Translations under genes and position numbers: made by a program
The notes under the pieces: model-generated
Database searches by the model: none
What the model was told of the DNA's origin: nothing
The model's input: only the letters and a program-made list of their open reading frames with translations
DNA from: Octopus bimaculoides
Lineage: Eukaryota
Direction: 5' to 3'
DNA length: 43,545 bases
Assembly: GCF_001194135.2 (NCBI RefSeq)
Contig: NC_068997.1
Coordinates: 46,070,019 to 46,113,563, forward strand
Part shown: positions 791 to 42,146 of the stretch, piece after piece
How the letters are laid out: each line of letters starts with the position of its first letter
Position numbering within the stretch: the first letter of the stretch is position 1

Positions 791-2139
791 ACATACACAC
801 CGCACATATATACCTGTACAAAACATATAACCGTGTCTTTGTTGCAAAAAGACGTACAAAATGTAAACATTCACACCGGAAGTTGACTCATTTAATGTCA
901 ATAAAGGTTTTACAAAAAATTACAGTTTAAATATGAAATTGACTTTTAGTTATGCTGGACAGTATAATGCTTACTTTTTCTGTATAAATTTACTAAAACC
1001 ATCAAATGGTTGACTACTTTTTGAAGTCTGATGTTCATGCTGGGTAAACACAGTCCAGGCCATATTTTACATTGCTTGGAGTTTCTACCTATCGCAAGGA
1101 AGCACCATTGACATATATAATGATATGGATAATCTTGATGTTTTTATTTTTGTCTGTTTATTACTCAGCAGTTTTAAGTTTGTCATACTGTTTACACCAA
1201 TTTTGAACATTGGCTCTATTGCCACGTTCAAATGGATATTCAACACATTTAATTTCTCCTTTGCAGTAAATGGTAAGTTCTGCCCATACTGACAATAACG
1301 GTAATGAGAAAGTTTTAAGTTTGCTTGACATTTTGTAAGTGTGAAAGAGATTAAAATTTCTATACTCCGTATCAAAGGTTCCGACAAGAATAGGTGGAAA
1401 AGAATTCTGTTTACATAATCAGTTCGATCGGTTACCTTCCTCTGTTGGTTGAACAAAGTGTCATCCAAGTAGATGTTTATTGGTAATTAAACTTAATTTG
1501 CAACACCTTTGCATATTTATCAGCTTTGTTATTGTCGGTAATTCTTATCAACAACTTTTCTTGTGATTGTCATTTGAGAAGACCTACAGCAGTATGCTAA
1601 AGATCGGACATAATCTCTTGTGGGCAAGAAATGCAAAATAAAGTTTATTATAAACAACACAAATAATTTGTAATTCAATAGCTTTCAATGTGATACCTAT
1701 TAAACAGAAATTATTTTTATTTGATGAAAATTTAATAAAATCTAATCATAACTAAGTGAAATTATGCTAAATACAACTAACTTGAAAACCTTTTTCCCCT
1801 CGCTATATTGGCAATTCTGAAAACTTTTGGGTGCAAATTTTACGTAAGTAGAAGCTTTTTTTAACAGATTTTATCCTGAAAATCACAAATGCGCAATTTA
1901 CATGGGTTTTTATGGTAGTAGTTGACTATCATATATTGAACCAATATAGTTAATTCTAAACTAGAAGTTTATATGATCTCTATATATATTATTGGCAAAA
2001 ATCAGTTTGTATGAATGTATTTAGTGGTGTTGTGTTACTTTCACTGAAAAGTGGAGAATGGCTCAACAGTTTGAATAAGGTCAACCAAAGTATACAACAT
2101 GATAATATTTAGGAAATTTAATGCATATGAATGACATAC

Positions 2140-2173
2140 CTGTGGTATCCATTATTGTTTCATCAGGTCCTTC
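2140..2173 (-). CDS. SAFB-like: Copy C 34-nt exon [11 protein letters not shown]
   Basis: ttttag/gtatg; homolog of B 22592-22625. Confidence 0.8.
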
Positions 2174-9113: not shown

Positions 9114-9280
9114 GGTACGATATATTATTATGCGCGATAGTCAATAGCCAGAGCTGTTGACTTTCTGACTTCACGTCGAAGCAAAAACTTATTAAGGACG
9201 CAATACTGTGTTGATATTATCTATACAACAGTTATCTCCCTTTTGTCGCGGTGACGTTGAAGCTACATCTTTTGTTGTTG

Positions 9281-9294
9281 CCACCAGATGGCAC
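9281..9294 (+). promoter_or_regulatory. CTCF-consensus motif upstream of copy C
   Basis: CCACCAGATGGCAC fits CCASYAGRKGGCRS; identical in copy B. Confidence 0.55.
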
Positions 9295-9366
9295 AAGTGT
9301 CAAACTTAAATGTATCGCTATGGCAATGATCATCTGATTTTTAATAGTCTTCTTATTCTTGCTTAG

Positions 9367-9740
9367 TGGAGGCGCAATGGCCCAGTGGTTAAGGCAGCGA
9401 ATTAGCGGTCATAGGATCGCGGTTTCGATTCCCAGACCGAGCGTTGTGAGTGTTTCTTGAGTGAAAACACCTAAAGCTCCACGAGGCTCCGACAGGGGAT
9501 GGTGGCGAACTCTGCTGTACTCTTGCACCACAACTTTCTCTCACTCTTACTTCCTGTTGTTTCTGTTGTGCCTGTAATTCAAAGGGTCAGCCTTGTCACA
9601 CTGTGTCGCGCTGAATATCCCCGAGAACTACGTTAAGGGTACGCGTGTCTGTGGAGTGCTCAGCCACCTGCACGTTAATTTCACGAGCAGGCTGTTCCGT
9701 TGATTGGATCAACTGGAACCCTCGACGTGGTAAGCGACGA
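9367..9740 (+). mobile_element. tRNA-derived SINE between B and C
   Basis: A box TGGCCCAGTGGT, B box GGTTTCGATTCC; same family as 28203-28574. Confidence 0.8.
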
Positions 9741-9942
9741 GTGAGCAAAGTTGCAGCAATTCCAAAAAAGGTCACCACAGAAGCAATCTGTTTGAATGAA
9801 TGAACTTTTTGTGGAAATTAAGTCGAGCAAAGCCAGAGGAGGTAAAGAAAAAAACATAAGGAAAGACAGGCATGAGGAATACATACAGAATAAATAAAAA
9901 TGACAAATAGAATACCTTGTTAGTGTTGTATAGTGAATAAAA

Positions 9943-9948
9943 TTTATT
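9943..9948 (-). terminator. Probable poly(A) signal of copy B
   Basis: Homologous AATAAA with U-rich downstream element. Confidence 0.5.
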
Positions 9949-10294
9949 TCTCCATATATTAATTTCTATGTGGTCTCTTTCCACTTCTTTATTAGTTGCT
10001 CTTCTATATATATAAATATATATATATAGATGTGTGTGCATGACTGTATGTAAAAATATGGTAGGACAGAAATATGACTGAATGTCCAAGAACCAAGCAC
10101 CACGTGGCAATTGGAATGAAAGATGTGGGTGATGTATGGCTGTAGGGCAGAGTTTTATTGTCTGTCTGAAATTCCATCTGCCACTCCAAAATCAAACACG
10201 TCAACATGACTTTAACACCTCAATCCTCAATTTGGATTTTACATAGACCCAATAATATCATAAACATCAAAACTAGGCTGTTGCATATGTCCCT

Positions 10295-10590
10295 TCATAT
10301 ACCACCACCACCACCCCTATGTGAAACCATGAGCCCACTATGCACTTGAGAGTTACCAAACATATTGCCATGTCCAAAGTACTGCCCCATCCCCCCACTG
10401 TTACCACTTTGACTACTGTTAACAAATGCTCCAGTGGCATCACGTCCTGTTTTGTTCGTGGGTTTATCAAGCCACGGTCCATTGGATCGGTTCATGCCAC
10501 TGTTGCCAATGTCTCCATGCATGTGGGACCAGTTGTCCATTTTCCTATCTACACCGCCGGAATCCCAAGATCTCTGATCTGGTCCACCAC
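10295..10590 (-). CDS. SAFB-like: Copy B terminal exon, Gly-rich, stopping early at GGGGI*
   Basis: ttttag acceptor; the tail homologous to A continues in a shifted frame to TAA 10239-10241. Confidence 0.82.
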
Positions 10591-11975
10591 CTAAAAGGAA
10601 TAAGACAGAAAAGATAGTATTTAAAGTTACACAAATATGAAAAATGAAAAGTTCAATGAATTAACTATAGAACAGAATAAACAAGGAGAATGTAGATGAA
10701 TGCAAAGAGAGGTATGGAGAAAAATAGGGCTTAACCCTTTAGCATTCAGATTACTCAGTCAAAAGTAATGTTTCTTTATTTACCTGGTTTTGAATTAATC
10801 ATGCATTATCTTGTAGGTTTGAGATTTTGATTAAGTGATTCTATATTTTGAGAATGACATTGTAGAGTTGGTATGAGAAGCCAGATATGGTTGAATATAA
10901 AACATAAAATACCTGGGCCCAGTTTAAATGAGAAAATGATAATAGAGAGGGACAGTTACAAAATGGTGGAGGATGGAGGTGAAGCTTTATTTGAGAGAGA
11001 AGGAGAGAAAAATGATTAAAACAAGCAGAAACTTACCAAAAGAATTTCTGCCCAGTCTATCGTTAGCTGATGTGTTTTGTTGGTCATTATCATATCCTCG
11101 GTCGGAACCAATATATCTTCTATCAAGTTCTCCATTTGGTCCCATATCTCTTCTTAATTCAGAGGGCATCCTGGAAATGAATCCATGAATACAAGCTGAG
11201 TAATCAATCAACATTCACCTATATACTGAGAGCCTTATGCTTACATCAACACTGACCCATACAGAGACTGGCAAACATGCCAACACTAATCCACAATACA
11301 CAAAACTGAGCTGTATAGAAGAATGATGTTTATAATAATATATACTAGCAAATGTGATTATCTGTATAAAGGCATAAGATAAAACCAAAAATTAAGATTT
11401 AAAAAAACAAATTACCAATTGAATTCTTCATCATTTCGAGAACGGTTATCAATTTGTCCTTCACCTCTGACTCGTGTATTGTGAAAAGGACCCATTTCCA
11501 TTCTCATCATTTCTCTTTCTTTACGGTCATCATAGCGACTTCCACCTTCCAAAGCTCTGCTGTCCCTTCTATCGTAACGTTTAATTCGTCTTCCATAATC
11601 TGTATTATACCTGAGAACGGAAATGAGAGATTAAATGAGATGTATTATATATATATATTATATATATGCAAGGAAATATTGATGACTGTTACATTAATGA
11701 TGCTTATTGAGGCAGAAACATGTTCTGAACTTGCCTCTTGTTTGCAAAGAAAGCAGACTGCCTTTTCCTTAACGGTATATCAATTTCAGAGAATTCTTGA
11801 TTCTTGATATTGTATCTCCTTCTCATTCAGAATCAGTAGCAATTACCAGCAGGTCTTTGTTTACCTTCTCTCAAAGCAAAGATAATTTCTATAAATCATA
11901 ACTGATTTTGTATGGTATTTAGAATATTTTTATTCACTTTGCTCTCGAAATTCATGCTACTGACCACTGAGTTAA

Positions 11976-12010
<35 letters not shown>

Positions 12011-15000
12011 GTCAGGTAACAAGAAATCAATGACAACATATTGTCTCCATTTACAACTTACCGTGATTCATCCTGGAATGGAAGTTCAAATCTAGACGAG
12101 TCACCAGAAGTCCTCATCCTGGATTGTTTATGTTCATCCCAGAGTTCTCTATCATGAAAACCACTTCGATCATGAGGTCTTTTTGCAGAATATCGCATTT
12201 CTTCAAACCTGATATTAAACAAAAAAACAGCAAAATCAAGTAATTAGCAACTGTACTAAATGACTAGCAGCTAAAAGATAAGGTAGTAAACAACTTTAAC
12301 TTTTAACAATTAAGCCTTTAGTGTTTAAACTGGCCATATCCAGCTCAAATATTCTATGTTTTATATTCAAACTGGCCAGATCCAGCATCTCACACCTAAC
12401 CTACATTGACATGCTAAAAATAAACAATCACATCATTGAAACCTCAAAGCTATAAGATAATGCATGATTAGCTAAAAACAATTTGAGTGAAAAATTATTA
12501 CATTTAACAGAGTAATTTGAACACTAAAGGGTTAACAACCAGGACACCAGTTTTGATAATGTTGCCTCTATGTAGCCATTACACATACTAGAAACAGCAC
12601 CCAAAGCTTCCTCAACTCGTCTTCAACAACCTTGAAAGAAAAACAAAATGTTGAATGCTTTGGATAAAGTAGTCCCACATTATATCTGGAAGAAAAACAA
12701 AGGTCTAAAATAGTAAAAATAAAAGTAGAATGACCATAGCTGGAACTCCTTTGATTATAGGTTTGCTCCAGCTGGGCTAACTTAGACTAGACAGAACCAC
12801 CACCAATGAGTTAACACCTGCTTGACAAAAAACAAGGTAGTAAACATCCCCCAAATAAAGAATACAGATGGCATACCAATGCAGATAATGGGATTAATTC
12901 CTTGCTACTAAGTAGCTAAAGACCATCACAGTAAATGATCTCACACTAATATATAAAATTGCTTTGTAGGCTTGCAGTTGTCATCAATTATTTTATACTG
13001 ATCTAGCAGACATACGATGTAAAGTATTCCCTGCAGTCACGGAATGTGAAGATTTGGCTGTTATTGCTAGCAGATCAAGCAATTACACCACATACATGCT
13101 TCCTCAGACCATCTATAAATATCATTATTATTATTATTACTAAGGCGGTGAGCTGGCAGAATCATTAGCATGCTGGCCGAAATGCTTAGCGGTATTTTAC
13201 CCATCGCTCTATACTGAATTCAAATTCCACCAAGGTTGAGTTTGCCAATCATCCCTTTGGAGTTGATAAAAATAAGTACCAGTTGAAAACTGGGTTCAAT
13301 GTAATCATCTCATCCTCCTCCCCCAAAATAGCTGCCCTTGTGGCAAAATTTGAAACCATTATTATTATTATCAGACTACAGTTGTGTTGAATATGATGTT
13401 GGTTAAGTAAGTCAGAGGGTACATTAGCACCACTGATTCATTGTCTTGCTTCCTCCATTATGAGATCAACGGATGAGCATTACACTTTGTTCCCACTATT
13501 AGGAAAAGTCCTACATTGCAATCATTAATCTAACAAACATGAAATTATCCAAGGGGAATAAAATATAATTCAGTCAAATAAGTGGTGTTGAAGACACGAA
13601 AAAAAACAATGAATTTATGTCATAAGCATTTAGAAACGTTGAGAGAATGTGAAATAATTTGTTCTCATCTGTACAGCCCACAGTAGATAAAGCCCACAGT
13701 ATTATAAATAATAGAGTATTGTATAATAATAGTAGAGCCCACAATATTATAAATAATAACAAGTAAATATTTGCTTGTAAACATTTTTGGATAGAAAAAG
13801 GCAAAGTGTACCTGTGGGACAATGGTAGAATGTCTGTCAAATTTACAGAAGATGTAAGGTCTTGCCCAAGGGTAGCCTTTTGGCTTTTTCTAACTAAAAG
13901 GGTTCTTAACCCATTATTTACATGATGTTATTTATGACTTTAGTTCACAGTATAATAGTATAACAACATAATCTGTCTCACTCACCGTAACAACTCAGCA
14001 GAACGCATCTCTTCTTCATGCCTTTCCATTTCCAAAAGTTCTTTTTCCATCCTGAATTTCTCCTTCTCAAGTTTCATTTTCTCCAGTTTCATTCTCTCTA
14101 ATCTGAAAAGTGTGAAAGAATTTAAAGATACCATAAAAAATTAGGTTTACTTAGCCAGAGGGGAAGCAGATGAGAAAAACTTTGCTAATGTTCAGCATCA
14201 TGAGGGCCAAAGATTTGAAGTGTTTCGTATTGCAAGACAGTGTGCGAGAGAGAACGGTGATGTCATAGGAGAGAAATGTGTCTGCATGGATGATGGTTCA
14301 CCTGCATTTGAATATATCTTACATATTTTGATCTTTAATTTTTTTTTTATATACTAAATATTTACCTTCTTTTACCATTCATTTAAAATGACATATTACC
14401 AACTTTTGTAACAAAATTCCAAATTCCTCATAAGCCACAATTACGATCTAAAAAATCTTTAAAATGGTTTTATGGCTTATAAAAGGAAGTGCAGTACCCA
14501 AGGTGTGTTTTTTCAGAGTCTCCAAGACTGATTGGAAGAAGGGAAAAAGTTATCCTTAGATTAGAGACTTGGGATCTATTTTAAAACGGGGACGCCAGTA
14601 TTTTCTTAACGAAACACTAACGAAACACTTTGAAACTTGGGACACTGGTAGAATGTGTCATATAAAACATCTTTTACTCTTAGTCTTCTTAACAAAAAAA
14701 AGGAATTCGCAAGTTATTCCATGTTAAAGTTGTCATATTTCTGTAATTTCAACCAATCACTGACGTCTATTCAGCTGAATAAGAGTTACTGCTGGGCGGT
14801 CATAAAAATGTTATTCCCTGTGACATATTTCATCCGGTTTAATCGTAATTTATACGCATATATTGTTTATATAATAAATTACGCTGTGCGTATCTATGTG
14901 TGTAACAATTTTAGAGTTCGGATTCTAGAGTTAAGGTTAGGGTTAGGGTTAGGGTTAGAGTTAGGGGATTAATACGATATACACCGTTACAGCGCTAACT

Positions 15001-17882
15001 GTTTTCACCTGAATAGACGTCAGTGATTAGTAGAAATTATCGAAATAAGACAATTTTTTAAATGAAATAAATTCGAATACAAAAATATTTTTCTGTTCTA
15101 TAACACAAAATAGATAAGTATACGAAGTTTGAAAGTCTTTCCGTACCAAAAACACTACATAAAACATAAATGAAAACTGGCGCCCCCGTTTTAAAATAGA
15201 TCTGAGACTTGACTGAAAGCTTAAAAAAGTGTGTACTCTGCTAAAGTCACCCAAGGACCGGATGTGCTCTTAAACAAGACAACAAAACAATTCTATCACC
15301 AAAAACAGGAATGGGCCTTCAGACAGCTTTTAACATAGTTTCCATCAATCAAAGCATTGGTCAACCTAAGACTATGATAGAAAACACCTGTCCAATGTGA
15401 TGCACAATGACACTGAATTTGATATCATGTAGACGTGAAGTAAACTTCTTACCCACACAATCATGCTGTCCTGTCTTAAACAGTTTAACCCTTTCGTTAC
15501 TGTATTTATTTTGAGATGCTCTGTGTTTCTTTCAATTACTTTAAATATAACAAAGAATTTAGTAAAATAACTTAGTTATCATTCAGCTAGTGTTAGGAAC
15601 ATAAATTGTGACTAAGTTTTGGTGGAAGATTTTAAATTCAAAACTTATGGAAACAAGACATTTGTACTCAGAGCCAGAGCCGGTTTCAGCCGGGTTGGTA
15701 ATGAAAGGGTTAAATGTGAATGCACTTTTAACAAACCTAATCTTCTCTCTAACTTTGTTCAATCTTATGACCTCCTCCTTCAGTTTCTGCAACAGTAACA
15801 ACATAATCTGTCTCACTCACCGCAACATCTCAGCATAACGCATCTCTACATCACGATTTTCCATTTCAAGAAGTTCTTTTTCCATTCTGGATCTTAATAA
15901 TTTCTCTTTTTCTAGCTTCATTTTCTCCAGTTTCATTCTCTCCAACCTGAAAAGTGTGAAAGAATATAAAAATAACATTAAGAATACAAACAGAAAAAAA
16001 TGAAAATCCCTACCTACACACACCAACTTCTATGTACCCTGACACATGTTATTCTACAAGAATACCCAAGAGATATTCTTTTGAGTCCAGGTGAAATTAC
16101 GTATTCATCCAAATGTCACTAAACGAAGCTTAAATATTAGGGATGTCTAATGACAGTGAGGAATCTACACAGAAACTATAAAGGTAAGTAGAATAGAGAA
16201 TAGCTTCATGATTCAGAATATTTAAGGGATAAAGATAAAATACAAATACATTTTATCACTTGTAAAAGTGTAGTGTGTCAGAAGGACAAAATGATCAGAA
16301 TACTAACGTCATTGTGAGCTGGACAAAAACACATAAATTTTCACTTAACATTCACATAACACTTAAATAAGTACCATGAGGAGGTATTATATAACATACT
16401 ACCATTTAGAAAAAATACATAGATAATATAGTCCGATAGATAGCCTTGAAAAGAAGAATGGTTACAGCCTTTGATTATAGGACAGCATGATAACTAAACA
16501 ATAACACAAAGAACAGTTCATCACAAGAATCAAGGAACTGTTTATTTGACAACCATTTTTTAAACTTTCACTGCTAAGTTCAATTCTTCCTTCGGCTTTG
16601 AAAGGATATTGAGGAAAATTCCTCCAAATATCTCAGCTCAGCCTCTCTTTGTCCCAAAAGAGAATTAAAAAATTACAATGGTCCAACTGGGTTATCAGAT
16701 CTTAAAACTAAAAATATCAAAAGATTGCTAAAACAATTTGAGCAAAGAATATAAATAATAAATATATCACTAAATTCATCTTACATATTCTGATCTTTAA
16801 TTTTCTTCTCATATATACTGATTATCTTTCTTCTTTTCCCATTCATTTAAAATAACTTGTGATCANNNNNNNNNNNNNNNNNNNNNNNNNNNNNNNNNNN
16901 NNNNNNNNNNNNNNNNNNNNNNNNNNNNNNNNNNNNNNNNNNNNNNNNNNNNNNNNNNNNNNNNNNNNNNNNNNNNNNNNNNNNNNNNNNNNNNNNNNNN
17001 NNNNNNNNNNNNNNNNNNNNNNNNNNNNNNNNNNNNNNNNNNNNNNNNNNNNNNNNNNNNNNNNNNNNNNNNNNNNNNNNNNNNNNNNNNNNNNNNNNNN
17101 NNNNNNNNNNNNNNNNNNNNNNNNNNNNNNNNNNNNNNNNNNNNNNNNNNNNNNNNNNNNNNNNNNNNNNNNNNNNNNNNNNNNNNNNNNNNNNNNNNNN
17201 NNNNNNNNNNNNNNNNNNNNNNNNNNNNNNNNNNNNNNNNNNNNNNNNNNNNNNNNNNNNNNNNNNNNNNNNNNNNNNNNNNNNNNNNNNNNNNNNNNNN
17301 NNNNNNNNNNNNNNNNNNNNNNNNNNNNNNNNNNNNNNNNNNNNNNNNNNNNNNNNNNNNNNNNNNNNNNNNNNNNNNNNNNNNNNNNNNNNNNNNNNNN
17401 NNNNNNNNNNNNNNNNNNNNNNNNNNNNNNNNNNNNNNNNNNNNNNNNNNNNNNNNNNNNNNNNNNNNNNNNNNNNNNNNNNNNNNNNNNNNNNNNNNNN
17501 NNNNNNNNNNNNNNNNNNNNNNNNNNNNNNNNNNNNNNNNNNNNNNNNNNNNNNNNNNNNNNNNNNNNNNNNNNNNNNNNNNNNNNNNNNNNNNNNNNNN
17601 NNNNNNNNNNNNNNNNNNNNNNNNNNNNNNNNNNNNNNNNNNNNNNNNNNNNNNNNNNNNNNNNNNNNNNNNNNNNNNNNNNNNNNNNNNNNNNNNNNNN
17701 NNNNNNNNNNNNNNNNNNNNNNNNNNNNNNNNNNNNNNNNNNNNNNNNNNNNNNNNNNNNNNNNNNNNNNNNNNNNNNNNNNNNNNNNNNNNNNNNAGAA
17801 TAAAACAACAATATAAAATGCTTTACCCCCCCGCCATAAAAATGAACTGATCCTACAGAACAAGTGCATGTGTGTGTGTGTG

Positions 17883-17923
<41 letters not shown>

Positions 17924-20900
17924 TCATCATCATCATCATCATCGTTTAACGTCCGCTTTCCATGCTAGCATGGGTTGGACGATTTGACTGAGGACTGGTG
18001 AAACCGGATGGCAACACCAGGCTCCAGTCTGATTTGGCAGAGTTTCTACAGCTGGATGCCCTTCCTAACGCCAACCACTATATCTTACAAGTGTATAAAT
18101 TTTAAGAAGCTTGTGATTTTGCCTTGAATTTATTTTGCACTGTTCCAGCGTTGCCCACGAATTTTATATATGTAATAGCACTTCCATATTCTGTCTCATT
18201 CACACATGCACACACACAACTTTCTCTCTGTCTCTACACCACCCATTCCTATTTCACTAAGGAAATATATTTATTTTTTTCACTTTTGTCTCTATATTTT
18301 TATCATTTACCGACACACTGCCCACAGCTGAATCTATTAAAAGGGGAAGAGGAACTGACAAAGCTGATCACATATTCTTAATTCAACAGGCTTATAAACA
18401 AAACAATGAATTGAGGATGTCTCACCCTTTCAACTGTTAATCTCATACCATTCACTCGAGTTTTATTCAGCCTCATTATACATTCCAAAGCTTCAGCCTC
18501 AGTTGACATAGTAACAAAAGCATGACATCGACCGCTACGTTTGTAATACTTTGTAACCTTTTGGCAATCCTCAACCTAATAAAAAATAAAGAATTAAAAT
18601 TTCATACATGAAAAATTCAGTCTGTATTCAGCTTCATAGTCTGTAGCAGCAGTATCACCCTCATTTAACAACATATCAATTCTGAATTGTTATTAGAACG
18701 ACACTGCAGATTTAAGTAAAACTCACTTCAAGAAGCACAAGAAGGAAATAGGGGGATTATTAATAAATGACATTTATCGAAAGACATAAAACACATTTCA
18801 TTCAACATACCTTGCCATGCTTGCTTAAAATTGAGACTAGGCCTTTAGTAGAGATATTTACAGGAAAGCCACAGATCCACAGATTCCGATTGGTTTGGTT
18901 GTTTCCTATTAATATAAGAATGCATCAATAAAAAACAAAAAGATGATGAGGAAATGCAACCCAGTAAGGTCAGGATTTCAAGTAATTCAAAGAAAAGCAA
19001 GAAGCTTAGAAAGTAAGAAAAGAGAATTTGAGAAAACATGCAAAAGAAAAAAAAAATTACCTTTTTTTGGAGATTTGGGCTTAGAAACCAAAGAACTGTA
19101 ACAATAAAAGAATCATTTAGAAATAGCATCATCATCATCATCATCATCAACAGTGAATTTTAAAGGACTGTAATGGATTATAATTTCAACATTGATGCAA
19201 GTGAAAACTGGCAAACCTACACATTACAACTTTACATTAATGTGCTTGNNNNNNNNNNNNNNNNNNNNNNNNNNNNNNNNNNNNNNNNNNNNNNNNNNNN
19301 NNNNNNNNNNNNNNNNNNNNNNNNNNNNNNNNNNNNNNNNNNNNNNNNNNNNNNNNNNNNNNNNNNNNNNNNNNNNNNNNNNNNNNNNNNNNNNNNNNNN
19401 NNNNNNNNNNNNNNNNNNNNNNNNNNNNNNNNNNNNNNNNNNNNNNNNNNNNNNNNNNNNNNNNNNNNNNNNNNNNNNNNNNNNNNNNNNNNNNNNNNNN
19501 NNNNNNNNNNNNNNNNNNNNNNNNNNNNNNNNNNNNNNNNNNNNNNNNNNNNNNNNNNNNNNNNNNNNNNNNNNNNNNNNNNNNNNNNNNNNNNNNNNNN
19601 NNNNNNNNNNNNNNNNNNNNNNNNNNNNNNNNNNNNNNNNNNNNNNNNNNNNNNNNNNNNNNNNNNNNNNNNNNNNNNNNNNNNNNNNNNNNNNNNNNNN
19701 NNNNNNNNNNNNNNNNNNNNNNNNNNNNNNNNNNNNNNNNNNNNNNNNNNNNNNNNNNNNNNNNNNNNNNNNNNNNNNNNNNTGTTAGTAGTTTGGAATT
19801 CAACGCAACACTCAAACCAGATATATGCACACACACACACACACACATTCTGTTTTAAAATAACTCACGATTAGCCACAAGAGGACGCTTGAAGACAAGT
19901 TAGCTTAAGGTTCAAGAAAATCTGTCCCCTTTGGCAGTTGTAGACCTCACTTTCAGCAAAGGTATCAACATCTTTTACCAAGAAGTAAGATCATTTAACT
20001 AATGACATCTTTGAATCAAAGCAGTGGGAAAGATGACATGAAAACCAACCTCTTCGACTTTACATCTTTATCATCTTTCTTTTCATCAGCCTTCTTCTCA
20101 GTTTGCCCTCCTTCGTTTTTACCTTTAGCCCTTTCTTCAACTTTGCTTCCATCTGTTTTCTTCACTTCAGTTTTGCCACTCACTTTGTCCTTTGATGCAT
20201 TGTCCGTTTTTGCTTTATTATTTGTCTTTGATGACACAATATCAGCAACTAAATCATTCTGCGTATCATCAACATGCAGAATCAATGATTCGTTTTCTNN
20301 NNNNNNNNNNNNNNNNNNNNNNNNNNNNNNNNNNNNNNNNNNNNNNNNNNNNNNNNNNNNNNNNNNNNNNNNNNNNNNNNNNNNNNNNNNNNNNNNNNGC
20401 CTCTACAGACAAATCCATGGTGACGCACACCAAGTTCCCATCATCTCTGATGGTCTTAGGGATTGTGAACAAGAGCTATGTTATTCCACCTTGCTTCTTT
20501 TTGCAGGGGCTCTCTGAGCCTATGTCACCATCTTCATCAAGCTGATGGACCCAGTGGTTAAGCCTTGAATGGAGTGGGTTGGCCAAGGGAAGACCGTGCA
20601 TGTTTCTGCTACTTTCCACATGGCCTTCACAATACAGGAGTGGCTGGTTGATTTTTCCCAAAATGTGATATCCAAGCTCCACTGATATGAACCTCCAACA
20701 CTGCTACTACATCTGGGATGTCATCAAGAGGGAGACCAGCCAGCAGCTCCACAACATCAAGGACTCATTGAAGGCCACCATCGCCGATGTGACAGGCAGC
20801 ATTAATGAGAACCACCTGATTCTGGCATCCAGTCGCTTCCATGGCCGCATTGAAACCGTCATTGTGAATGAGGGTAGTTTTACTAAACAATCTGTTTCTT

Positions 20901-23900
20901 TAATAAATCTAATCGAATATATGTGCCATTTTCCTAGTAATATATTTTGCCGCTTTAATATCTTTCTTTTCCCTCATATTTTACTTGGTTCTCAAACATG
21001 AATGCATACACACACATACACACAATGCATAAAATTTCATATATATATATATAAACACAATCCCTGATACAATTTGTTACACAAGTGCATAAGCCACTGT
21101 CAGACATCTGAACAGAAACTACAGCATTGCATCTGCTGTCAAACAAGAAGCTTCCAATTATACTGGAACTGTGGACTGCAGCCCAAGTACACATTCTGGG
21201 ATAGGCTACACCTTTCGTTAGTATTTGCTGAGGATCCTCTGCAGCATTAAAAGACAGTCATATCAGTTGATCATGCCATTCACATGAAATGTCTCATCTG
21301 ACCAAAATATCTGAACAACAAAGCAGAGACCACTGCACAAGTACATCAACATTTCCTGGCAGAATTGAGCCTTAGTTACTGTGATGTAACGTAATTAACT
21401 CATATTTCTGAAAATAAAAATGTTTGCAGTTAAACTTCGTATGCAAACATTTATATGATATTATAAACTTTATGTGCAAACATTGATATGGTATATAAAT
21501 AATACCATTTATATGGTATCATTTAAAGTAAATTTAACTGATTATCACAATTTAACTCAATAATTATAATAAACTTAATGTACAACTTATAACAAACCCT
21601 ATATATTCAAAATTACTAACATTCTAAACATTGAGAAGTTTCAAAATTTCTGAATCTATGTAACACCAATTACATTTATAGATAATATTCAGAAATATTT
21701 GTCAACTAACTATTACCTTCAGTGTACAAATTCTACACAAGTACAGTTATTTGTAAATAAATATCGACTCGGAAAAATTTGTATGTGATACTCCATCATA
21801 TAGCATAAAGAAAGAAAATGTAGCCATTCTTTTACCTAAAGCTATACATACACTCACATTAAATATATTGAAGCACAAGAGCCAGAATTAATTATCTTTA
21901 AGGGAACTTCACCACTGCACTGCAAATATGCAACACTAATTACAGTCATTTTAAGTTTTGCAATAAAATTAATAATTTGTGGCTCCAGAAACACAAAATG
22001 AACCACAAACTCGTTGTAAGCTAACAGTTCAGCAAACTACAATTGTCTCTTAAAATTAAACTGTACAAACCAATTTTCAATGCTAAAGACAATGGCAGAG
22101 AGAAAGTAAACATTCTTCAAATAACACCATATACCAGATTAGTAGTTGACTACCATATATCGAACCAATATAACTCATTCTAAACTAAAACTTCATATAA
22201 ACTGTACATAGCCCTTTAGCATTCAGATTATTCAGTCAAATGTAATGCTTATTTATTCACATTGTTTTGAATTAATCCTGCATTATCTCGTAGCTTCAAG
22301 ATTTCCATGATGTGTTAGTTTATTTATACAATGACATTGTATAGTAAGTGTGAAAAGCCAAATCTTGCCAATTTGAATATAAAACGTAGAATATTTCAGC
22401 TGGATATGGCTAGTTTAAATGCTAAAGGCTTAATACAAACCTTTATGAGCAACATGTATATCACTGGCAAAATGATAGTAGAGCTGCACTTTGTTATTTT
22501 CATTGAGACAATAAAACAACTGATATAAGGTCAATCTAAGTATACAATAAACAGGCTATTTTAGGAAATTTAAAGCAAGTGAATTACATACCTGTGGTAT
22601 CCTTTAATGCATCATCAGATTGTTCCTGGAAAGTGAAGAAAAAAAATAACTGATATGACTAATAGCAACAAATGAAAGAAAACACATACAGTAGCAGTAC
22701 ATTTTTCATTTTTACTTTCATTCATATTATGTCAAATTGCTTATCTTTATATGTAATATAATTGTGAATCAAGATATGTGTATATGTGAATCAAGATGTT
22801 TTTATGTTTCAAGAATTTTAAGTGGAATTTATAATTGGTCAACTGTGATAGATATAGGAAACTGTTGAATTTCAAGTAAAATAATCTTCATATTAATGAA
22901 ATCATACCATATCTAACACTAATTATCAATTATGAAATGAAAGTAATAACTTGCACTAAAACAAGGAGTGCAATATAGTTAGTAGAACAATGTAAAAGGT
23001 GTAGTAAATTTTAATTACCTGTAGAACAGTTCCAGTGTCTTTGTTCGTATCTGAAGAAGAGATAGGTAGTTCCTCTTTAAACTGGTCTTTATCTAAGGTG
23101 TTATCTGCCAACATATCTGATGGTTTGGTATCACTTGAAAGCAGTCGATCCTCAGTAAGGTCTCCCACAGAAGTTTTGTCAGGGATCAAAGAATATCCAT
23201 CTGGATTGGTGGTGTTTAAGAAGACATCTGTTAATGCCACATCAGACGTCTCCGATTCTTTCTGAAAATTAAAATAAAACACGTTTCTGTTACCCCTCAA
23301 CACTGAATCATCCTATATTTATCCTTTGCTCACTGTAATATCCATTAGTACCTTATTCTTATTGAATGCTTAAATTATTGCTGTATTCCATTTTTTACTA
23401 TAATGATTTTTATCCTATTATTATAGAATAATAGTACTTTCTTCTTTGCGATTCACAGTGATTATTGCTGTGCTACAGGTAAAGCTCTTTTCAGTTATGA
23501 AATTCAATTGTTGTTAATGACCACAGTACGTCTGTGTACTTCACTGGTCTTTTTCATGGATAGCATTATCAAACTGACATTGAAATTCTAACACTAAAGT
23601 AAACTAAGTGAACACATCACAGTAGAGTATGATCACCAGGAGAGATCCAGTGTTCCTGAATCCTAGCAGTTTTATCAACTTTGCAGGTTAAGCATTAAAA
23701 AGGAACAAGATTATTTCCTAATATGTGCAATGATTCTGTTTTTCTTGAATTAATAAAAAATATCATGTACCCAGTGAAGTATGTTTCTCAGTGTTTTATT
23801 CATGGAAACAACAGAGGCTTGTCATGAGCTGTTTAGGTAATGTGTGGTTGATGCCAAAGTAGAGAAGATAAATTAAGAGTGGCATTATAGGCACCTGATG

Positions 23901-25855
23901 AGTGGAGTTGGTAAATAAAAACTGAAACAAGCCCATCATACATACACATTTGTGTATACTACAATCTGTCAAGAAGCACACAGTTTCTGTTTATCAGATT
24001 CGTTTACAAAGCATTGGACAGCCTGGGGTTCTAGTAGAGGACACTGGCCAAATATGCCATGTAAGAAGGCTGAACCTGAATCCACATGTCGCAAAGTAAG
24101 CCTCTTAATCACACAATAGATTTTTGTTTTTCAGCCAGAGTAACACCTCCGAAAAATAGTATACTAAACAGTGACAAGTGGAAAATACATAGAAGACAAT
24201 AAATTATCTATAAAAATATGACAAAATTCACCAACCTCATCCATGTTGTCTGTATAAGTTTGTTTTCTGGAAATAAAAAAATAATTCAACATCAGAACAG
24301 TAATTTCAGTGGATTAAAAACACTACATTACATAATACTGTTACGCACATCTAACAAGTTTAAAATTCAGTTTCACACACCTGAATACGAGAACATTGTA
24401 TTACATATTAACTAGTTAAAAAAGCACGAAACAAAGTTGCTGTTTTATATCCAATTGTCACATTAACAATGGCAGAAAGGGTTTTAATGCACTTCTTGTT
24501 CATAAAATATATTACTGTCAAATGAGAATGGAACTTGTCAGCTCAGTAGACGGAGACAACACAGTTTGCTAAAGTGAACAACACATTTAATTCATTTAGC
24601 ATCTGAAATAAAATTATCAGGATTGATACATCTCCCAGTGTGACCAGCAACACTCTAGCTAAAATAATCATCATTCATCATTAACTTTTAACAGAACTGG
24701 TTGTTATATGATGATGGGAAATAAACAAAGAGACTCGCAAGCACACAGGATTCCTGAAGGAGTCTGACATTGACCAAACATTCGATTTCCTCGAAGATAT
24801 TAAGTCATCGAAGCACTGGAGAGATGATGAAAATCTACAAGGACTAACTCTGAGAAAGTACAATAACTGAAGTATAAAAAAACCTTGATGGAACTCAACT
24901 GCCTCAAGCTTTTTGTAATAGTTGCTCAAGGTTTGCTATCTTGGATGAAAAGATGAACTTGAAAGCTTGGTCAGTAATTGGGGCTCCAAAAACGGAACCA
25001 CACTGATGAGGGAGGAACCGCAATAGAGGGGAAGGAATCTGTAAATAGGTTAACAGACTGCTGATGTGAAGCTGAATGCAAACCAGAGCTTGCATTTGGA
25101 ACTGTTGATGCTAAGGCCTCCACGAGTTCCTCAATCACCATCCTCACAGTTGCAAGAATCTTGTCAGGAGGGCCCCCAAACAATCATCGTCAAAATACCA
25201 GACATGATCCTACAACGTCTATCTAGCGCGAATGCGCAAAACGTGTATGACGGTTTTTTAAAACAAAGTAAATAATTTTTTTTTAAACTAAATAATTTTT
25301 TTGGCGATCTTTCGATAGATCGCCAATAAACTTTCAAAACTCCCGGTGAAAACAGAAAAATCCAACTTATGTGGGTGAGCTTGTTTCGAAACTCCGCCAT
25401 TACACATCAGTCTTTCGCTTTCCGTTTACAACTGATTCTATATATTCCATTAGATTCCCGTAAATGGTGAGATGGGGCTGATTACCAGTAGATATATAAC
25501 GAAGTAGTACTTAGTAACAAATAATCAGTTATGCTTTTATAAAATATAAACAAGTCATTATAGCGGTTTGTGTTTAAAATGGCTACAATGACTTTCCCCA
25601 CAATGAAACCATAATTTTCTTCTAATATTCCTATGTTAGTTTGACATTTTTACACGATTTTTGAAGATTCACGAAACCCAAACACTATTATATCTATTAT
25701 ATGCTACTATGCCTTTATATCTGTATTATATATAAACACCGTCGCTGATTAACATGTCTCCTACCTTTTTCCACTCCAGTCTTGTCCAGACCTCGTTTTT
25801 CCAGTTCACTGCGAAGATCCACAACCCTGAGATCTGTTAACTTATCACAGACCAG
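10295..25855 (-). CDS. SAFB-like: SAFB-family gene copy B (divergent paralog, or recently inactivated copy)
   Basis: 13 visible exons homologous to A and C with intact GT-AG sites and open frames. Anomalies: net -23 nt at the end of the SAP exon relative to C, and a 1-nt frameshift near the stop. Part of the gene lies in gap 16866-17796. Confidence 0.85.
10731..10930. mobile_element. TTAA/piggyBac-type MITE relic in the last intron of B
   Basis: ttaaccctttagcattcagatt terminus; orthologous relic in A at ~29670-29885. Confidence 0.6.
11037..11170 (-). CDS. SAFB-like: Copy B exon MPSELRRD...RNSF
   Basis: 134 nt (6 nt shorter than A, in frame), ttccag/gtaag. Confidence 0.87.
11416..11610 (-). 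CDS. SAFB-like: Copy B exon YNTDYGRR...EEFN
   Basis: 195 nt (12 nt shorter than A, in frame), ctcag/gtaat. Confidence 0.87.
11978..12008. repeat. (CA)n microsatellite
   Basis: Direct reading. Confidence 0.9.
12062..12208 (-). CDS. SAFB-like: Copy B exon FEEMRYSAKRPHDR...FQDES
   Basis: 147 nt, 36/48 aa identical to A. Confidence 0.87.
12314..12531. mobile_element. TTAA/piggyBac-type MITE
   Basis: TTAA at 12310-12313 and 12532-12535; empty site aacaattaacaaccagg in A near 33793. Confidence 0.75.
13142..13370 (+). mobile_element. tRNA-related SINE
   Basis: ggcggtgagctggcagaatc head; flanked by (ATT)n; related to 31066-31283 and 30200-30405. Confidence 0.65.
13986..14102 (-). CDS. SAFB-like: Copy B coiled-coil exon 2b ([20 protein letters not shown]...SAELL)
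   Basis: 117 nt, phase 2-2, tttcag/gtgag; duplicate of 15821-15946. Confidence 0.8.
14572..15203. mobile_element. Non-autonomous TIR element (MITE) with 8-bp TSD, internal inverted repeat and (TTAGGG)n core
   Basis: TIRs 14573-14599 / 15176-15202; TSD GAGACTTG; perfect 20-bp internal IR 14755-14774 / 15009-15028. Confidence 0.85.
15489..15709. mobile_element. TTAA/piggyBac-type MITE
   Basis: TIR ccctttcgttac / gtaatgaaaggg, TTAA TSDs; empty site in A at 35819-35822. Confidence 0.85.
15737..15786 (-). pseudogene. Duplicated 3' remnant of coiled-coil exon 1 (KLKEEVIRLNKVREKI)
   Basis: Matches the end of A exon 35846-36009 including its gtttg donor. It has a ttgcag acceptor only 34 nt after the upstream donor and is out of frame if included. 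Confidence 0.7.
15821..15946 (-). CDS. SAFB-like: Copy B coiled-coil exon 2a ([23 protein letters not shown]...YAEML)
   Basis: 126 nt, phase 2-2, 35/41 aa identical to A 34804-34929. Confidence 0.8.
17921..18079 (-). mobile_element. 5'-truncated SINE with (CAT)n tail
   Basis: Near-identical reverse complement of ~6020-6175. Confidence 0.8.
18426..18575 (-). CDS. SAFB-like: Copy B RRM exon 2, diverged (VEDCQKVTKYYKRSGRCHAFVTMSTEAEALECIMRLNKTRVNGMRLTVER)
   Basis: Same 150-nt length as A, attag/gtgag, no stops. Confidence 0.88.
18811..18905 (-). CDS. SAFB-like: Copy B RRM exon 1, diverged (NNQTNRNLWICGFPVNISTKGLVSILSKHGK)
   Basis: Same 95-nt length, phases and splice contexts as A 41703-41797. 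Confidence 0.88.
19061..19095 (-). CDS. SAFB-like: Copy B exon SSLVSKPKSPKK
   Basis: 35 nt, ttacag/gtaat, phase 2-1. Confidence 0.8.
20050..20296 (-). CDS. SAFB-like: Copy B exon ENESLILHVDDTQND...DVKSK
   Basis: Open Lys/Asp/Glu-rich frame, gttgg donor. The 5' boundary abuts gap 20299-20398; the AG at 20297-20298 gives the required phase 1 but is unverified. Confidence 0.75.
20399..20900 (+). mobile_element. Tc1/mariner (maT, DD37D-like) transposase 3' remnant
   Basis: HTKFPSSLMVLG...PPCFF and STDMNLQHCYYIWDVIKRET...SRFHGRIETVIVNEGSF. Confidence 0.7.
21060..21400 (-). mobile_element. Second Tc1/mariner-like transposase remnant
   Basis: FWSDETFHVNG...TWAAVHSSSIIGSFLFD resembles the FSDEAHFHLNG...VWxAISxxGIIGPFFF motifs. 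Confidence 0.5.
22210..22432. mobile_element. TTAA-type MITE
   Basis: ccctttagcattcaga...aatgctaaaggcttaa; absent at the homologous position in C (~1970-2000). Confidence 0.6.
22592..22625 (-). CDS. SAFB-like: Copy B 34-nt exon EQSDDALKDTT
   Basis: ttccag/gtatg; same-length homolog in C (2140-2173). Confidence 0.8.
23019..23261 (-). CDS. SAFB-like: Copy B acidic exon KESETSDVALTD...TVLQ
   Basis: 243 nt, phase 0-0, tttcag/gtaat; near-identical to C exon 2501-2737. Confidence 0.85.
25765..25855 (-). CDS. SAFB-like: Copy B exon 1, shortened SAP ([32 protein letters not shown])
   Basis: SAP motif; gtagg donor as in C; 91 nt counted from CTG, ends in phase 1. Confidence 0.8.
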
Positions 25856-26005
25856 GGTATGATTTATTATATATAAGTGACTGACGAGAGTTGTTGATCC
25901 CCTGATATCACGTTGAAGCAAAACTTAAGGACGCAATTAATAGTTTCAATATTTATTTACACAAGTTAGCTCCCCTTCTAGTTGAAACTGCCTCTTTTGT
26001 TGTAG

Positions 26006-26019
26006 CCACCAGATGGCAC
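26006..26019 (+). promoter_or_regulatory. CTCF-consensus motif upstream of copy B
   Basis: CCACCAGATGGCAC, 151 bp upstream of the CTG. Confidence 0.55.
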
Positions 26020-26544
26020 ATTATGACATGACCCTCACATTACTGTGTCTTTGACCTTTATGCTTTATAACAAAATCAATTCTTGCTCATATTTCAGTCA
26101 AGACTCACCTTAGGGAACTCCGCGTTCTTAAATCTTGTATAACATAAGCACGTATCTTCTATTATAGCCTGGGCCAACTAAAGCCGCACCATATGTATCT
26201 GTGTGACGTTTTTTTTCTCTTTTGTTTTTAGTTTTTCTACTCCGGCTTGACAACCGGTGATTTGTTTACGTCCCCTCTAACTTATTGGGTCAGCAAAATT
26301 GCTATACGATAAGCATAAGATTTAAAAAATAGGTACTCGGGTCGATTTGTTCAACTAAACTCTTCAATGTGATGTCCCAGCATGTCTGGAGTAAGTAAAA
26401 GATATAAGTTAGAAAAACTACTCTTGTAAAAATAACTATTTTTAAACACAAAGCGGAGCCTGGCTCGAGTTCAAATCCTTTCCATTCTGGAGCCGACGGG
26501 ACTATGCAGAAGTTATGGGAAGAGACCAGATAGTCTTATTGTTT

Positions 26545-26900
26545 GCCTCATCTAGGACGTGACAGGTAGTGACTCCTTTGTTCATACCCACATAATGGAT
26601 GCTGCGGTAAATGGGAGGGTCACTGCTTCCGTAGCCGAACGGAACAAAATCCTTAAGTATCGGGACTTGTCGGTGAATATCTTATTCCAGCCTGAGGTGT
26701 TTGAGACATTTGGAGGGGCTAGACCGTTAACAACGAAGTTCTTGGTTATCGTTGGCGACTCGCCTTACCGTCGTGATGTTAGGTGATGCCGGTGAGAGTG
26801 CTTGGCTGTTCTGATGACTTAGCTTCGCCATCGCCCGCGCTAATTCCGTGAGTGTGTTGGCTTGCATCAGTAAGTTCCGTTGAACCTTGTAGTGTGCGAC
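26545..26900 (+). mobile_element. 3' end of a CRE-clade-like non-LTR retrotransposon
   Basis: AERNKILKYRDLSVNILFQPEVFETFGG, then frameshifted TRLTVVMLGDAGESAWLF**LSFAIARANSVSVLA. Confidence 0.6.
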
Positions 26901-27479
26901 CAATAGGAGCACCTAGTGTTGAATTGGTGTTTTATACTTTCTTTCTTTCTCGTTTTCTGGCTTTTTTCTTTCTTTGGTTTTGTATTATATATGTAATTAT
27001 ATATAGTGTTATATATGTAATTACTAAATTCAAATCATGATTTTCATGGAATATTTATGAAATAAAAAAGGTTTAGTATATATTTGAAGAGAAATACATG
27101 GATATTAATAAGAATGCTGTAGAGCACATACTCATCACAAAAACTGACTGTTGCTGTGTGATGGAAGAGGTGGGGACCCCAACTTCTCTCTCTCACCCAT
27201 AATATCATCAAGAGCAGCATCTGTTTTAGGGATGAAGAACTTATCCAAAGGTGTTTGCAGTTACAGCACTCCATCTCTTTGTATAGCTAGTGTAGGACTG
27301 GAATCCTTAATGGACTCTTCTTGTAAATTACAAGTTTGCGTAATGTCAAATAAACATGTTTTTAATTTTTCTCAATAATTTAATAAAATAACGAAAGTGT
27401 AAGTTACGAATGGACATGCAGAATTAAGTAGAGAGAAACAAATAACGCCAGGTTTATTCAATATTTTAATGGACCTCCT

Positions 27480-28100
27480 TTAGAATGAGCTGCATCTACT
27501 CTTATGGGCAGAGATTCCACCAACTTTTGGCACATTTTCCTATTTCATCATCTCTATACCACACTTGAATGAAGGATTGAATGTTTCTACTTGTTTCATT
27601 CGAGACCGTAGTGACTATACGGTTTAAAAAAAATTTTTTTTATATATACTCCAGTGGTTTTCGATGGGCTTTAAATTTGGTTAAGATGGAGGTCAAAGAT
27701 GCAGTGTTACATCATGTTGACAAAGGGAATCCATTGAATGCTTGCCAACAGGAATTGGGGCGTTATCTTGCTGAAAAATGCTGCCACAGTTTGGAAATTA
27801 GTCGATGCTGTCTTTTATGCAATGCTCACAATGAAGTTTTCCTTCAATAACATGACTACATCCAGTTCCCCCATAGAAAAATAAAAGCCCAGATCATTAT
27901 TGCGCTGGATGTTTTAGCGTTTTTAAGAAATGGTCCTGTGTTAGAGAATGACCATCTACTAATCAAACAAAATTTGGGCAATCATCTATAATCTGAATCA
28001 TTGTCTCGTCGCCAAAAATGACCGTTTTCCGGTGTTTAAGTACTCTGTCATAGTGTATGGATATCTTACTTATTAAGAAGTAGATAGTTTAGCAGCTTTA
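27480..28100 (-). mobile_element. Tc1-like transposase remnant
   Basis: Reverse strand FQQDNAPI...PPS*PNLKPIENHWS. Confidence 0.7.
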
Positions 28101-28202
28101 AAGCACAGGCGCCTGCTGTACAATCCGTAAAGAAACATCAGCTTCTTGCCAAAATTGTTTGTATTGATTAATAATATAGAAAGAAATAAAGACATGAGGA
28201 AT

Positions 28203-28574
28203 TGTTGGCACTCCGTCGAGGGTTCCAGTTGATCCGATCAACGGAACAGCCTGCTCGTGAAATTAACGTGCAAGTGGCTGAGCACTCCACAGACATGTGT
28301 ACCCTTAACGTAGTTCTCAGGGGTATTCAGCGTGACACAATGTGACAAGGCTAGACCTTTGAAATACAGGCACAACAGAAACAGGAAGAAAGAGTGAAAG
28401 AAAGTTGTGGTGGAAGAGTACAGCAGGGTTCGGTACCATCCCCTGCCGGCGCCTTGTGGAGCTTTAGGTGTTTTCGCTCAATAAACACTCACAACGCCCG
28501 GTCTGGGAATCGAAACCACGATCCTGTGACCGCTAGTCCGCTACCCTAACCACTGGGCCATTGCGCCTCCACTG
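28203..28574 (-). mobile_element. Full-length tRNA-derived SINE with 13-bp TSD
   Basis: TSD AGACATGAGGAAT at 28190-28202 and 28575-28587; empty homologous site in B near 9869-9880. Confidence 0.9.
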
Positions 28575-28647
28575 AGACATGAGGAATACACACAGAATAA
28601 ATAAAAATAACAAACATAATACTTGGTGTGTTTTATAGTGAATAAAA

Positions 28648-28653
28648 TTTATT
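28648..28653 (-). terminator. Probable poly(A) signal of copy A
   Basis: AATAAA ~500 nt after the stop, followed by U/GU-rich sequence; conserved in B. Confidence 0.5.
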
Positions 28654-28908
28654 TCTCCATATATTAAATTCTATGTGGTCTCTCTCACTTCTTTATTACA
28701 TTCTGTGGTTGCTCTTCTTCCCCTCTCCCCCCACTTTCATGAATACAATATATCTGGGCTCCGACCCCTCCTTTTTCATTAATATATTCAACTGTGGGAA
28801 GTGTGTGTCGGGAATAACAGTAATAAAATATAGCAACAAATATGAAGGAAATAAATATATTAAGACAGTAATGTTGGAGTAGAGTGAAGATAGGGAGAAG
28901 GCAGTACG

Positions 28909-28909
<1 letters not shown>

Positions 28910-28941
<32 letters not shown>

Positions 28942-28962
28942 GTGTGTGTGTCTGTGTGTGTG
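28910..28962. repeat. (TA)n(TG)n microsatellite in the 3' UTR of A
   Basis: Shorter homolog in the B 3' UTR at ~10005-10040. Confidence 0.85.
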
Positions 28963-29154
28963 CATGCGTTAAAATATGGAAGGGCAGAAATATGATTGGA
29001 TGTCCAAGAACCAAGCACTACGTGACAAATGGAATGCAGGATGTGGATGATATATTGGCTGGGGGGCAGGGTTTTATTATCTGTCTGAGACACCCTCAGC
29101 CCCTCCAAATCAAACACTTCAACATGACTCAGACCTCAGTCCTCAATTTGGATT

Positions 29155-29528
29155 TCACATAGATCCCATAATATTATAAGCATCAAAACGAGGCTCTTGC
29201 ATACGTCCACTCATATTACTACCACCACCACCACCACCGCCACTGCCACCACTACTACCACCACCATGTGTAACCATCATGATCCTACTGTGTGACTGAG
29301 TGTTGCCAAACATATTACCAGGTCCCATGTTCTGTCCCATCCCCCCACTGTTACCAGGTCTACTATTGTCAACAAATGCCCCACTGGCATCACGCCCCGT
29401 TTTGTCCATGGGGTTACTAAGCCACGGTTCGTTGGATTGGTCCATGTCTCCATGCATGTGGGACCAGTTGTCCACTTTCCTATCAACACTGCCAGAACCC
29501 CAAGGAGGTCTCTGGTCAGGTCCACCAC
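29155..29528 (-). CDS. SAFB: Copy A terminal coding exon, Gly-rich tail ending [11 protein letters not shown]
   Basis: ttctag acceptor, TGA at 29155-29157. Confidence 0.9.
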
Positions 29529-41986: not shown

Positions 41987-42146
41987 CTGCAACAATAAAA
42001 CAAATGTTTAGAAATATTAGGATGATGATTATGAATAGTGAATGTCATTCATATGAATTACATTCAACTAGCAACTCAAACGATGTTATTCTAGGACCCT
42101 AACTATAGATATGTAGAGATATATATTAAAGGAACAGATAAGGGCT

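Follow-up and report, generated by a model that had tools for sequence, protein, structure and literature searches.

The sequence analysed here, a window of 43,545 nucleotides (nt) of the Octopus bimaculoides genome (assembly GCF_001194135.2, contig NC_068997.1, positions 46,070,019 to 46,113,563), holds at least three head-to-tail copies of a SAFB gene on the minus strand, with an odd copy, B, lying between two canonical ones, A and C (Table 1). A comparison of the window with itself shows the tandem repeat unit directly, since 22140-42016 is collinear with 1916-19125 and the introns are included. Exons for the SAP domain are found at ~25.8 kb and ~9.05 kb, that of A lying outside the window. 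The model of A is wholly in frame from the micro-exon to the stop codon, with compatible phases throughout E3-E10. For C, a deposited protein model (P0132, UniParc UPI00069545D7) matches the SAP and acidic exons at 100% and runs on into a canonical RRM identical to that of A at 77 of 81 residues, which is thus the RRM of C, beyond the window start; in this model, which is what ties the window to a deposited proteome, the SAP exon is joined to a portion of the acidic exon and to this RRM. Like the vertebrate SAFB1, SAFB2 and SLTM and the Drosophila Saf-B, A and C follow the order SAP domain, acidic region, RRM, basic region, Glu/Arg coiled coil, RG-rich region and Gly-rich tail, and their RRMs are typical members of the family, in which the SAP and RRM are the highly conserved domains (PMC9958909).

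The initial annotation had drawn attention to the two RRM exons of B, and its description of them holds in detail. They share the lengths, phases and AG/GT splice sites of the A exons, contain no stop codon, and encode a domain that agrees with A at exactly 32 of 81 residues. The RNP2 motif changes from LWVSGL to LWICGF, the RNP1 motif from RCYGFVTM to RCHAFVTM, and the loop before RNP1 (loop3) from NARSPGA to KYYKRSG, while the downstream exons E6, E7, E8 and E9 are 85%, 75%, 73% and 77% identical at the protein level, close to what had been estimated. Upstream of the RRM, the B micro-exon has a 6-nt deletion relative to A, which leaves the frame untouched (35 and 41 nt are both 2 mod 3), and both of its splice sites, a cag acceptor and a gtaa donor, are shared with A. 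The intron that separates the RRM exons measures 2260 nt in A (41702-39443) and 235 nt in B (18810-18576), and only its ends can be aligned (203 columns, 72% identity, 11 gap openings); either the A intron gained insertions or the B intron lost sequence.

Among the family members retrieved, the RRM of A is 75-85% identical to those of insect and vertebrate SAFB proteins, which bears out the earlier statement that no part of the family is more conserved than its RRM. In an alignment of 26 distinct family sequences 48 columns are at least 90% conserved, and A keeps 47 of these, whereas B keeps 24; the SAFB RRM signature (KVVTNARxPGARCYG[FY]VTM ... TELHGR) is not preserved in B. Nearly all of the protein change in the RRM occurred on the B branch. 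Judged by its position, its exon structure and the homology of its flanking introns, the B domain still descends from a SAFB RRM. A sequence search of the PDB returned no solved SAFB RRM nearer to B than generic RRMs, and word-index protein searches with the B RRM, and with a profile of B and the related protein described below, yielded nothing new.

The B domain is still recognised as an RRM, matching Pfam RRM_1 (PF00076) with 38.4 bits (E = 1e-9, positions 1-69 of 70, gathering cut-off 20.7). Structure prediction, which had been proposed as a check, gave the beta-alpha-beta-beta-alpha-beta topology both with an alignment and from the single sequence (AlphaFold2, predicted local distance difference test (pLDDT) 85 and 71, respectively), and a Foldseek comparison of the model with solved RRMs gave template modelling scores of 0.75-0.86. 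Seventeen of the 21 large hydrophobic positions are still hydrophobic. As in the generic RRM_1 family, B keeps the classical stacking and salt-bridge residues, namely Trp at RNP2 position 2 (W10), Arg at RNP1 position 1 (R48) and Phe at RNP1 position 5 (F52). Unlike it, B has His instead of Tyr or Phe at RNP1 position 3 (Y50 in A), and the loop3 block is modelled with low confidence (pLDDT 65). The B RRM should adopt the RRM fold and stack RNA bases.

These properties were compared with a neutral simulation, in which the RRM coding sequence of A was evolved until it had accumulated as many differences as B shows (91). Stops were avoided in just 5.4% of the runs (P(no stop) 0.054). The stop-free simulants retained 29.1 +/- 2.9 identities to A, so that the 32 of B are unremarkable, but their BLOSUM62 score to A was 107 +/- 20 against 166 for B (P = 0.004), which means that the replacements in B are conservative. 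None of 100 stop-free simulants matched RRM_1 at E <= 0.01, not even the 21 with at least 32 identities to A. In addition, over their 245 nt the RRM exons of B have not a single insertion or deletion (indel), whereas the gap density of the flanking introns (3.7-5.4 gap openings per 100 aligned nt) predicts 5-11. Since no simulant remained recognisable, the replacements are conservative, indels are absent and the fold is predicted, plain neutral decay is rejected, and the fold of the B RRM has been selected for.

A second sequence of this type was found outside the assembly. When 1.8 billion cluster representatives were scanned exhaustively with HMMER, one protein (P0137) turned up with 70% identity to B across a matched stretch of 44 exon 2 residues; it is encoded on a 1.9-kb Logan contig (L001) from an independent sequencing run, SRR11869390. 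The corresponding exon has intact splice sites and encodes 50 residues, 34 of them identical to B and 21 to A, and shares with B the derived residues RCHAF, STEAEAL, CIM, VNGM and TVER; its flanking introns are 81-82% identical to those of B and 66% to the region of A. Between B and L001, exon 2 shows a nonsynonymous divergence (dN) of 0.19-0.22 and a synonymous divergence (dS) of 0.38-0.63, with a Kimura two-parameter distance (K2P) of 0.21-0.22 in the introns. By parsimony, the branch from A to the common ancestor of B and L001, which includes the nearly unchanged lineage of A, carries 25 amino-acid changes (ratio of nonsynonymous to synonymous proportions, pN/pS, 0.85), and the two tips carry 7 and 12 (pN/pS 0.55 and 0.71). 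The reconstructed ancestor has an artefactual stop at an ambiguous codon, and only the counts were used. Under a clock, and with the assumptions this entails for 50 codons, the stem and tip counts point to a burst of replacements on the B-type stem (omega, i.e. dN/dS, ~1.6-2.2) followed by a slowdown, and this pattern disfavours a constant neutral decay. Upstream of exon 2, L001:1-480 does not align to the short intron or to exon 1 of B, and exon 1 of L001 was therefore not recovered; this part of the contig may hold a degraded transposon open reading frame, for which there is no Pfam match. Exact look-ups of five open reading frames of the window and of P0132 in the contig index of L001 gave no match.

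How much of the contrast between the RRM and the 3' half of B reflects protein evolution, and how much the age of the segments, can be judged from the rates. Between A and B, the RRM (81 codons) has dN 0.49, dS 0.62 and omega 0.80 (bootstrap 95% confidence interval (CI) 0.44-1.39), against dN 0.13, dS 0.33 and omega 0.39 (CI 0.26-0.59) in the 3' exons (289 codons), and the 91 nucleotide differences in the RRM are spread evenly over codon positions 1, 2 and 3 (33/29/29). The comparison of flanking introns, also proposed at the outset, gave K2P 0.32-0.38 beside the RRM exons (71-74% identity, 510 columns) and 0.14-0.25 in the 3' introns and 3' flank (79-87% identity). By these two measures, intron K2P and dS, presumably neutral sites are ~1.7-1.9 times more diverged at the RRM than in the 3' half. 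Gene conversion is visible in the array, with a tract of ~420 nt, ~200 nt of them intron, in which B and C are 95-100% identical (~23460-23040 and ~2936-2522) and whose flanks are only 64-81% identical. For these reasons, part of the contrast is attributable to segment age. Age is not the whole explanation, because dN is ~4 times higher and omega doubles at the RRM. Gene conversion, which the initial annotation had offered as an alternative, is thus upheld as a contributor but not as a substitute for faster protein change.

Outside the RRM the state of B is mixed, and the description of the copy as intact holds for the two RRM exons only, the SAP exon and the last exon being frameshifted. Relative to C, 21 nt are missing from the SAP exon, the acceptor region among them, and a net 23 nt that code for SAP helix 2 are gone as well; the exon covers only positions 2-24 of the 37 of Pfam SAP, so that B lacks a complete N-terminal SAP domain as found in the family, and it ends in phase 1, so that splicing to the acidic exon would lead to a stop within a few codons. 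In E10, a 4-nt deletion creates a premature TGA at 10297-10295 and removes the last ~20 residues, and downstream of it the old frame still reads MQQPSFDVYDIIGSM followed by a stop, like the C-terminus of A. Exon 6 is present twice with a 50-nt fragment of exon 5 in between, the result of an internal tandem duplication (16118-13980) whose junction lies ~25 nt into intron 6, and no counterpart of the 39.2-35.9 kb region of A is found in the assembled sequence of the window. The SAFB C-terminal regions (Glu/Arg coiled coil, RG-rich and Gly-rich) are nevertheless present in E6-E10, and stops or frameshifts, which occur in the SAP exon and E10, are absent from the micro-exon, both RRM exons and E6-E9. 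Among the nine indels that separate the A and B exons, eight are multiples of three (6, 9, 12, 6, 3, 15, 3 and 27 nt) and the exception is the 4-nt deletion. By our binomial calculation such an excess has a probability of ~0.001 under neutrality, and we infer from it that the reading frame of B was under selection for most of its divergence. If expressed, B would give a SAP-less, C-terminally shortened protein; alternatively, the decay of the gene would have set in recently.

In our view, B represents a divergent 'B-type' SAFB lineage that originated by tandem duplication inside the array and that combines a fast-evolving RRM of preserved fold with a mosaic history, a reading to which we assign a probability of roughly 0.55; asymmetric divergence after tandem duplication is the most likely history of the copy. 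A duplication within the array, whose other members A and C are canonical, would have founded the lineage. The data show that the RRM of B then escaped the constraint under which SAFB RRMs hardly vary among animals, and that it went through a burst of replacements at or above the neutral rate, most likely followed by a period of weak constraint. Selection meanwhile maintained the length of the exons, their frame and splice sites, the hydrophobic core of the domain and the residues at the centre of the RNP motifs. Conversion or unequal exchange among the members of the array has left the 3' half, together with part of the 5' half, younger than the RRM island, and this inflates the contrast between them. 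The claim that the B RRM evolved far faster than the rest of its gene and than any other SAFB RRM, while remaining a foldable domain and not debris, is supported by our data.

Several points weigh against this reading. The protein collections searched contain no spliced B-type RRM. The SAP exon, in both frame and acceptor, and the last exon are broken, and exons 3-5 fall in the assembly gap; B may be non-functional now. Values of dN/dS are indistinguishable from 1, both between A and B and between B and L001 (0.3-0.6; 50 codons), and the intron alignments are short and close to splice sites. The succession of burst and slowdown depends on the clock and on the A lineage having added almost no replacements. 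L001 is either an orthologue from a different species or one more paralogue of O. bimaculoides; in both cases the B-type is a lineage and not a one-off.

The initial annotation had gone further and read the RRM as adaptively rewired, with positive selection favouring a novel specificity for RNA, perhaps through an arms race against the transposon RNAs that SAFB suppresses. This we consider doubtful. We simulated the B branch as neutral and the A branch as constrained, under a clock and conditioned on the observed 23.3 synonymous differences. The expectation is 46-51 +/- 13 nonsynonymous differences, against 67.8 observed (P = 0.055-0.11, depending on kappa), which corresponds to an omega of ~1.3-1.5 on the B branch. 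This value is not significant, and together with the interval on the pairwise omega it makes positive selection only suggestive and an adaptive change of RNA specificity a possibility. The clock-based estimate for exon 2 goes in the same direction, with an omega of ~1.6-2.2 on the stem and slower tips (0.55-0.7), and since part of the domain is constrained, its remaining sites probably evolved faster than the average. At the same time, dN/dS lies near 1 where synonymous and intron divergence are both raised, the combination that the initial annotation had itself named as a refutation, and this weakens the adaptive reading.

The distribution of the changes over the domain (Table 1) is also ambivalent. 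The proposal that the RNA-binding surface changed fastest stands for the RNA-proximal periphery, that is, loop1, strand 2 and loop3, where loop3 gained Tyr-Tyr-Lys-Arg and the outward-facing V34 and V38 of strand 2 became Glu and Lys. It fails for RNP2, RNP1 and strand 4, which hold the RNA-stacking positions and are the best conserved, and the face of helix 1, which points away from the RNA, changed as much as the loops. Given the changes in the periphery and in helix 1, an altered RNA preference, affinity or set of protein partners is plausible, and the pattern as a whole fits a general turnover of the surface with the core kept. The RNA targets of SAFB1, SAFB2 and SLTM are purine-rich (GAAGAA-like) and include L1 transcripts, and the three proteins suppress exonisation, as the initial annotation had stated of the family, and the fly protein is similar; binding of L1 and other transposon RNA and suppression of exonisation are thus documented in human, mouse and fly (PMC10901741). 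The proposed conflict with transposons is a speculation that extrapolates from these mammalian and fly proteins, and no feature in the window ties B to any transposon. Furthermore, B would have to act without a working SAP exon and C-terminus.

That B is instead a pseudogene, whose RRM exons decay neutrally and keep an open frame and splice sites by chance, appears improbable. The dN/dS near 1, the flat distribution over codon positions and an identity within the neutral range are all compatible with it, as are the lesions of the SAP exon and E10, the partial internal duplication and the failure to find a spliced product in the protein collections. It does not account for an RRM_1 match of 38 bits that no simulant retained, for the conservative nature of the replacements, for an RRM free of stops and indels, or for the predominance of in-frame indels elsewhere in the exons. 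Nor does it explain a second intact B-type exon with the same derived residues in an independent data set, or a dN of 0.49, which is above the yield of one neutral branch at a dS of 0.62.

A bolder version of the preferred scenario, which we regard as quite improbable, would have octopod-like genomes carry the B-type as a separate lineage within the tandem array, in which the fold is kept and the periphery repeatedly remodelled, an adaptive, fast-evolving counterpart to the invariant, pattern-guided SAFB masking of transposon RNA, selected for new targets such as lineage-specific transposons and shielded from conversion by that selection.

We consider it very unlikely that the contrast is purely an artefact of age, with ordinary constraint on an RRM island that is merely older than a homogenised 3' half. 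The raised neutral divergence at the RRM (K2P 0.35 against ~0.2, dS 0.62 against 0.33) and the activity of gene conversion in the array are what such an artefact needs, but dN rises ~4-fold and not 1.7-fold, omega goes from 0.39 to 0.80, and the conservation of A (77 of 81 residues shared with C, 47 of 48 family columns against 24 in B) places the excess specifically in the B protein. Finally, an ancient separate paralogue was rejected as the origin of the B-type, as the flanking introns align to A at 71-74% and a dS of ~0.6 is unsaturated.

Compared with other members of the SAFB family, B stands apart by an RRM only 40% identical to that of A, with half of the family-invariant residues replaced, and by its truncated and frameshifted SAP exon. 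The locus as a whole resembles known cases of asymmetric divergence between tandem duplicates with a conversion island, having one conserved and one fast copy, a mosaic of identities and a sharp conversion tract; in this single genome, the divergent island is the B RRM, which was either protected by selection or already too diverged for conversion. Tandem duplication of SAFB is also found in mammals, in SAFB1/SAFB2, and literature searches on SAFB duplicates in cephalopods and on run SRR11869390 found nothing. The RRMs of SAFB proteins rank with the best-conserved RNA-binding domains of animals, and of late SAFB has been portrayed as a suppressor of transposon RNA that is innate and non-adaptive. 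A duplicate with the fold kept and half of the invariant residues replaced would be a natural experiment on the residues that set RNA preference and, if B is expressed, a candidate for a new RNA specificity. The locus also shows that conversion in tandem arrays can make one pair of exons look anomalously diverged.

Table 1. Features of the SAFB array in the window, the B-type exon of contig L001, and conservation of structural elements between the RRMs of B and A.
Feature	Position	Strand	Remark
Copy A	43.5-29.2 kb	minus	5' end off-window; RRM at 41.8/39.4 kb, to stop at 29155
A micro-exon	41986-41946	minus	41 nt
A RRM exon 1	41797-41703	minus	95 nt; canonical
A RRM exon 2	39442-39293	minus	150 nt; canonical
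A E3	38269-38140	minus	
A E4	37596-37379	minus	
A E5	36009-35846	minus	
A E6	34929-34804	minus	
A E7	33393-33247	minus	
A E8	31714-31508	minus	
A E9	30931-30792	minus	
A E10	29528-29155	minus	stop included
Copy B	25.9-10.2 kb	minus	SAP remnant 25.8 kb, acidic exon 23.2 kb, RRM 18.9/18.5 kb, last exon 10.6-10.2 kb
B SAP exon remnant	25847-25765	minus	acceptor region deleted
B acidic exon	23261-23019	minus	inside B-C gene-conversion tract
B micro-exon upstream of RRM	19095-19061	minus	35 nt; SLVSKPKSPKK, in frame
B RRM exon 1 (R1)	18905-18811	minus	95 nt; ...aatag/GA...AAG/gtatgt; RNP2 = LWICGF
B intron between RRM exons	18810-18576	minus	235 nt
B RRM exon 2 (R2)	18575-18426	minus	150 nt; ...attag/GT...AGG/gtgaga; RNP1 = RCHAFVTM, loop3 = KYYKRSG
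Assembly gap	16866-17796		931 N; expected place of B exons 3, 4 and 5' half of exon 5
B exon 6a	15946-15821	minus	126 nt
B partial exon 5'	15786-15737	minus	50 nt
B exon 6b	14102-13986	minus	117 nt
B E7	12208-12062	minus	
B E8	11610-11416	minus	
B E9	11170-11037	minus	
B E10	10590-10239	minus	4-nt deletion after Gly run
Copy C	9.1 kb to window start	minus	SAP exon 9.1 kb, acidic exon 2.7 kb; rest off-window
C SAP exon	9104/9084-8979	minus	intact; Pfam SAP positions 5-34
C acidic exon	2737-2501	minus	
L001 B-type exon 2	L001:576-725		150 nt; ag/GT...AGG/gtgag, splice sites intact
RNP2 strand			4/7 identical to A
Loop1			0/5 identical to A
Helix 1			1/8 identical to A
Strand 2			2/7 identical to A
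Loop3			2/9 identical to A
RNP1 strand			5/7 identical to A
Helix 2			5/11 identical to A
Strand 4			3/5 identical to A

A few further features of the window were recorded. In B (26018-26005) as well as in C (9293-9280), the SAP exon is preceded at a distance of ~160-190 nt by the identical 14-mer TGCCATCTGGTGGC on the minus strand, which at up to two mismatches has 3 matches against 0.11 expected. We take it to resemble a CTCF-type core, and it may be a candidate promoter or insulator element of the SAFB repeat unit. A short interspersed repeat occurs at 33482-33779, 5659-6166 and 17932-18079, with copies 94-98% identical to each other; at 5.6-6.2 kb three copies stand in tandem, and the copy at 17932-18079 is located just downstream of RRM exon 2 of B and adjoins the assembly gap. 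An Rfam scan of the window found no RNA family, and a Pfam scan of its larger stray open reading frames gave no match. Another organism in the representative library has a SAFB-like protein of 834 residues (P0121) with two near-identical canonical RRM blocks in tandem, which reflect a true duplication within the protein or else an artefact of assembly.

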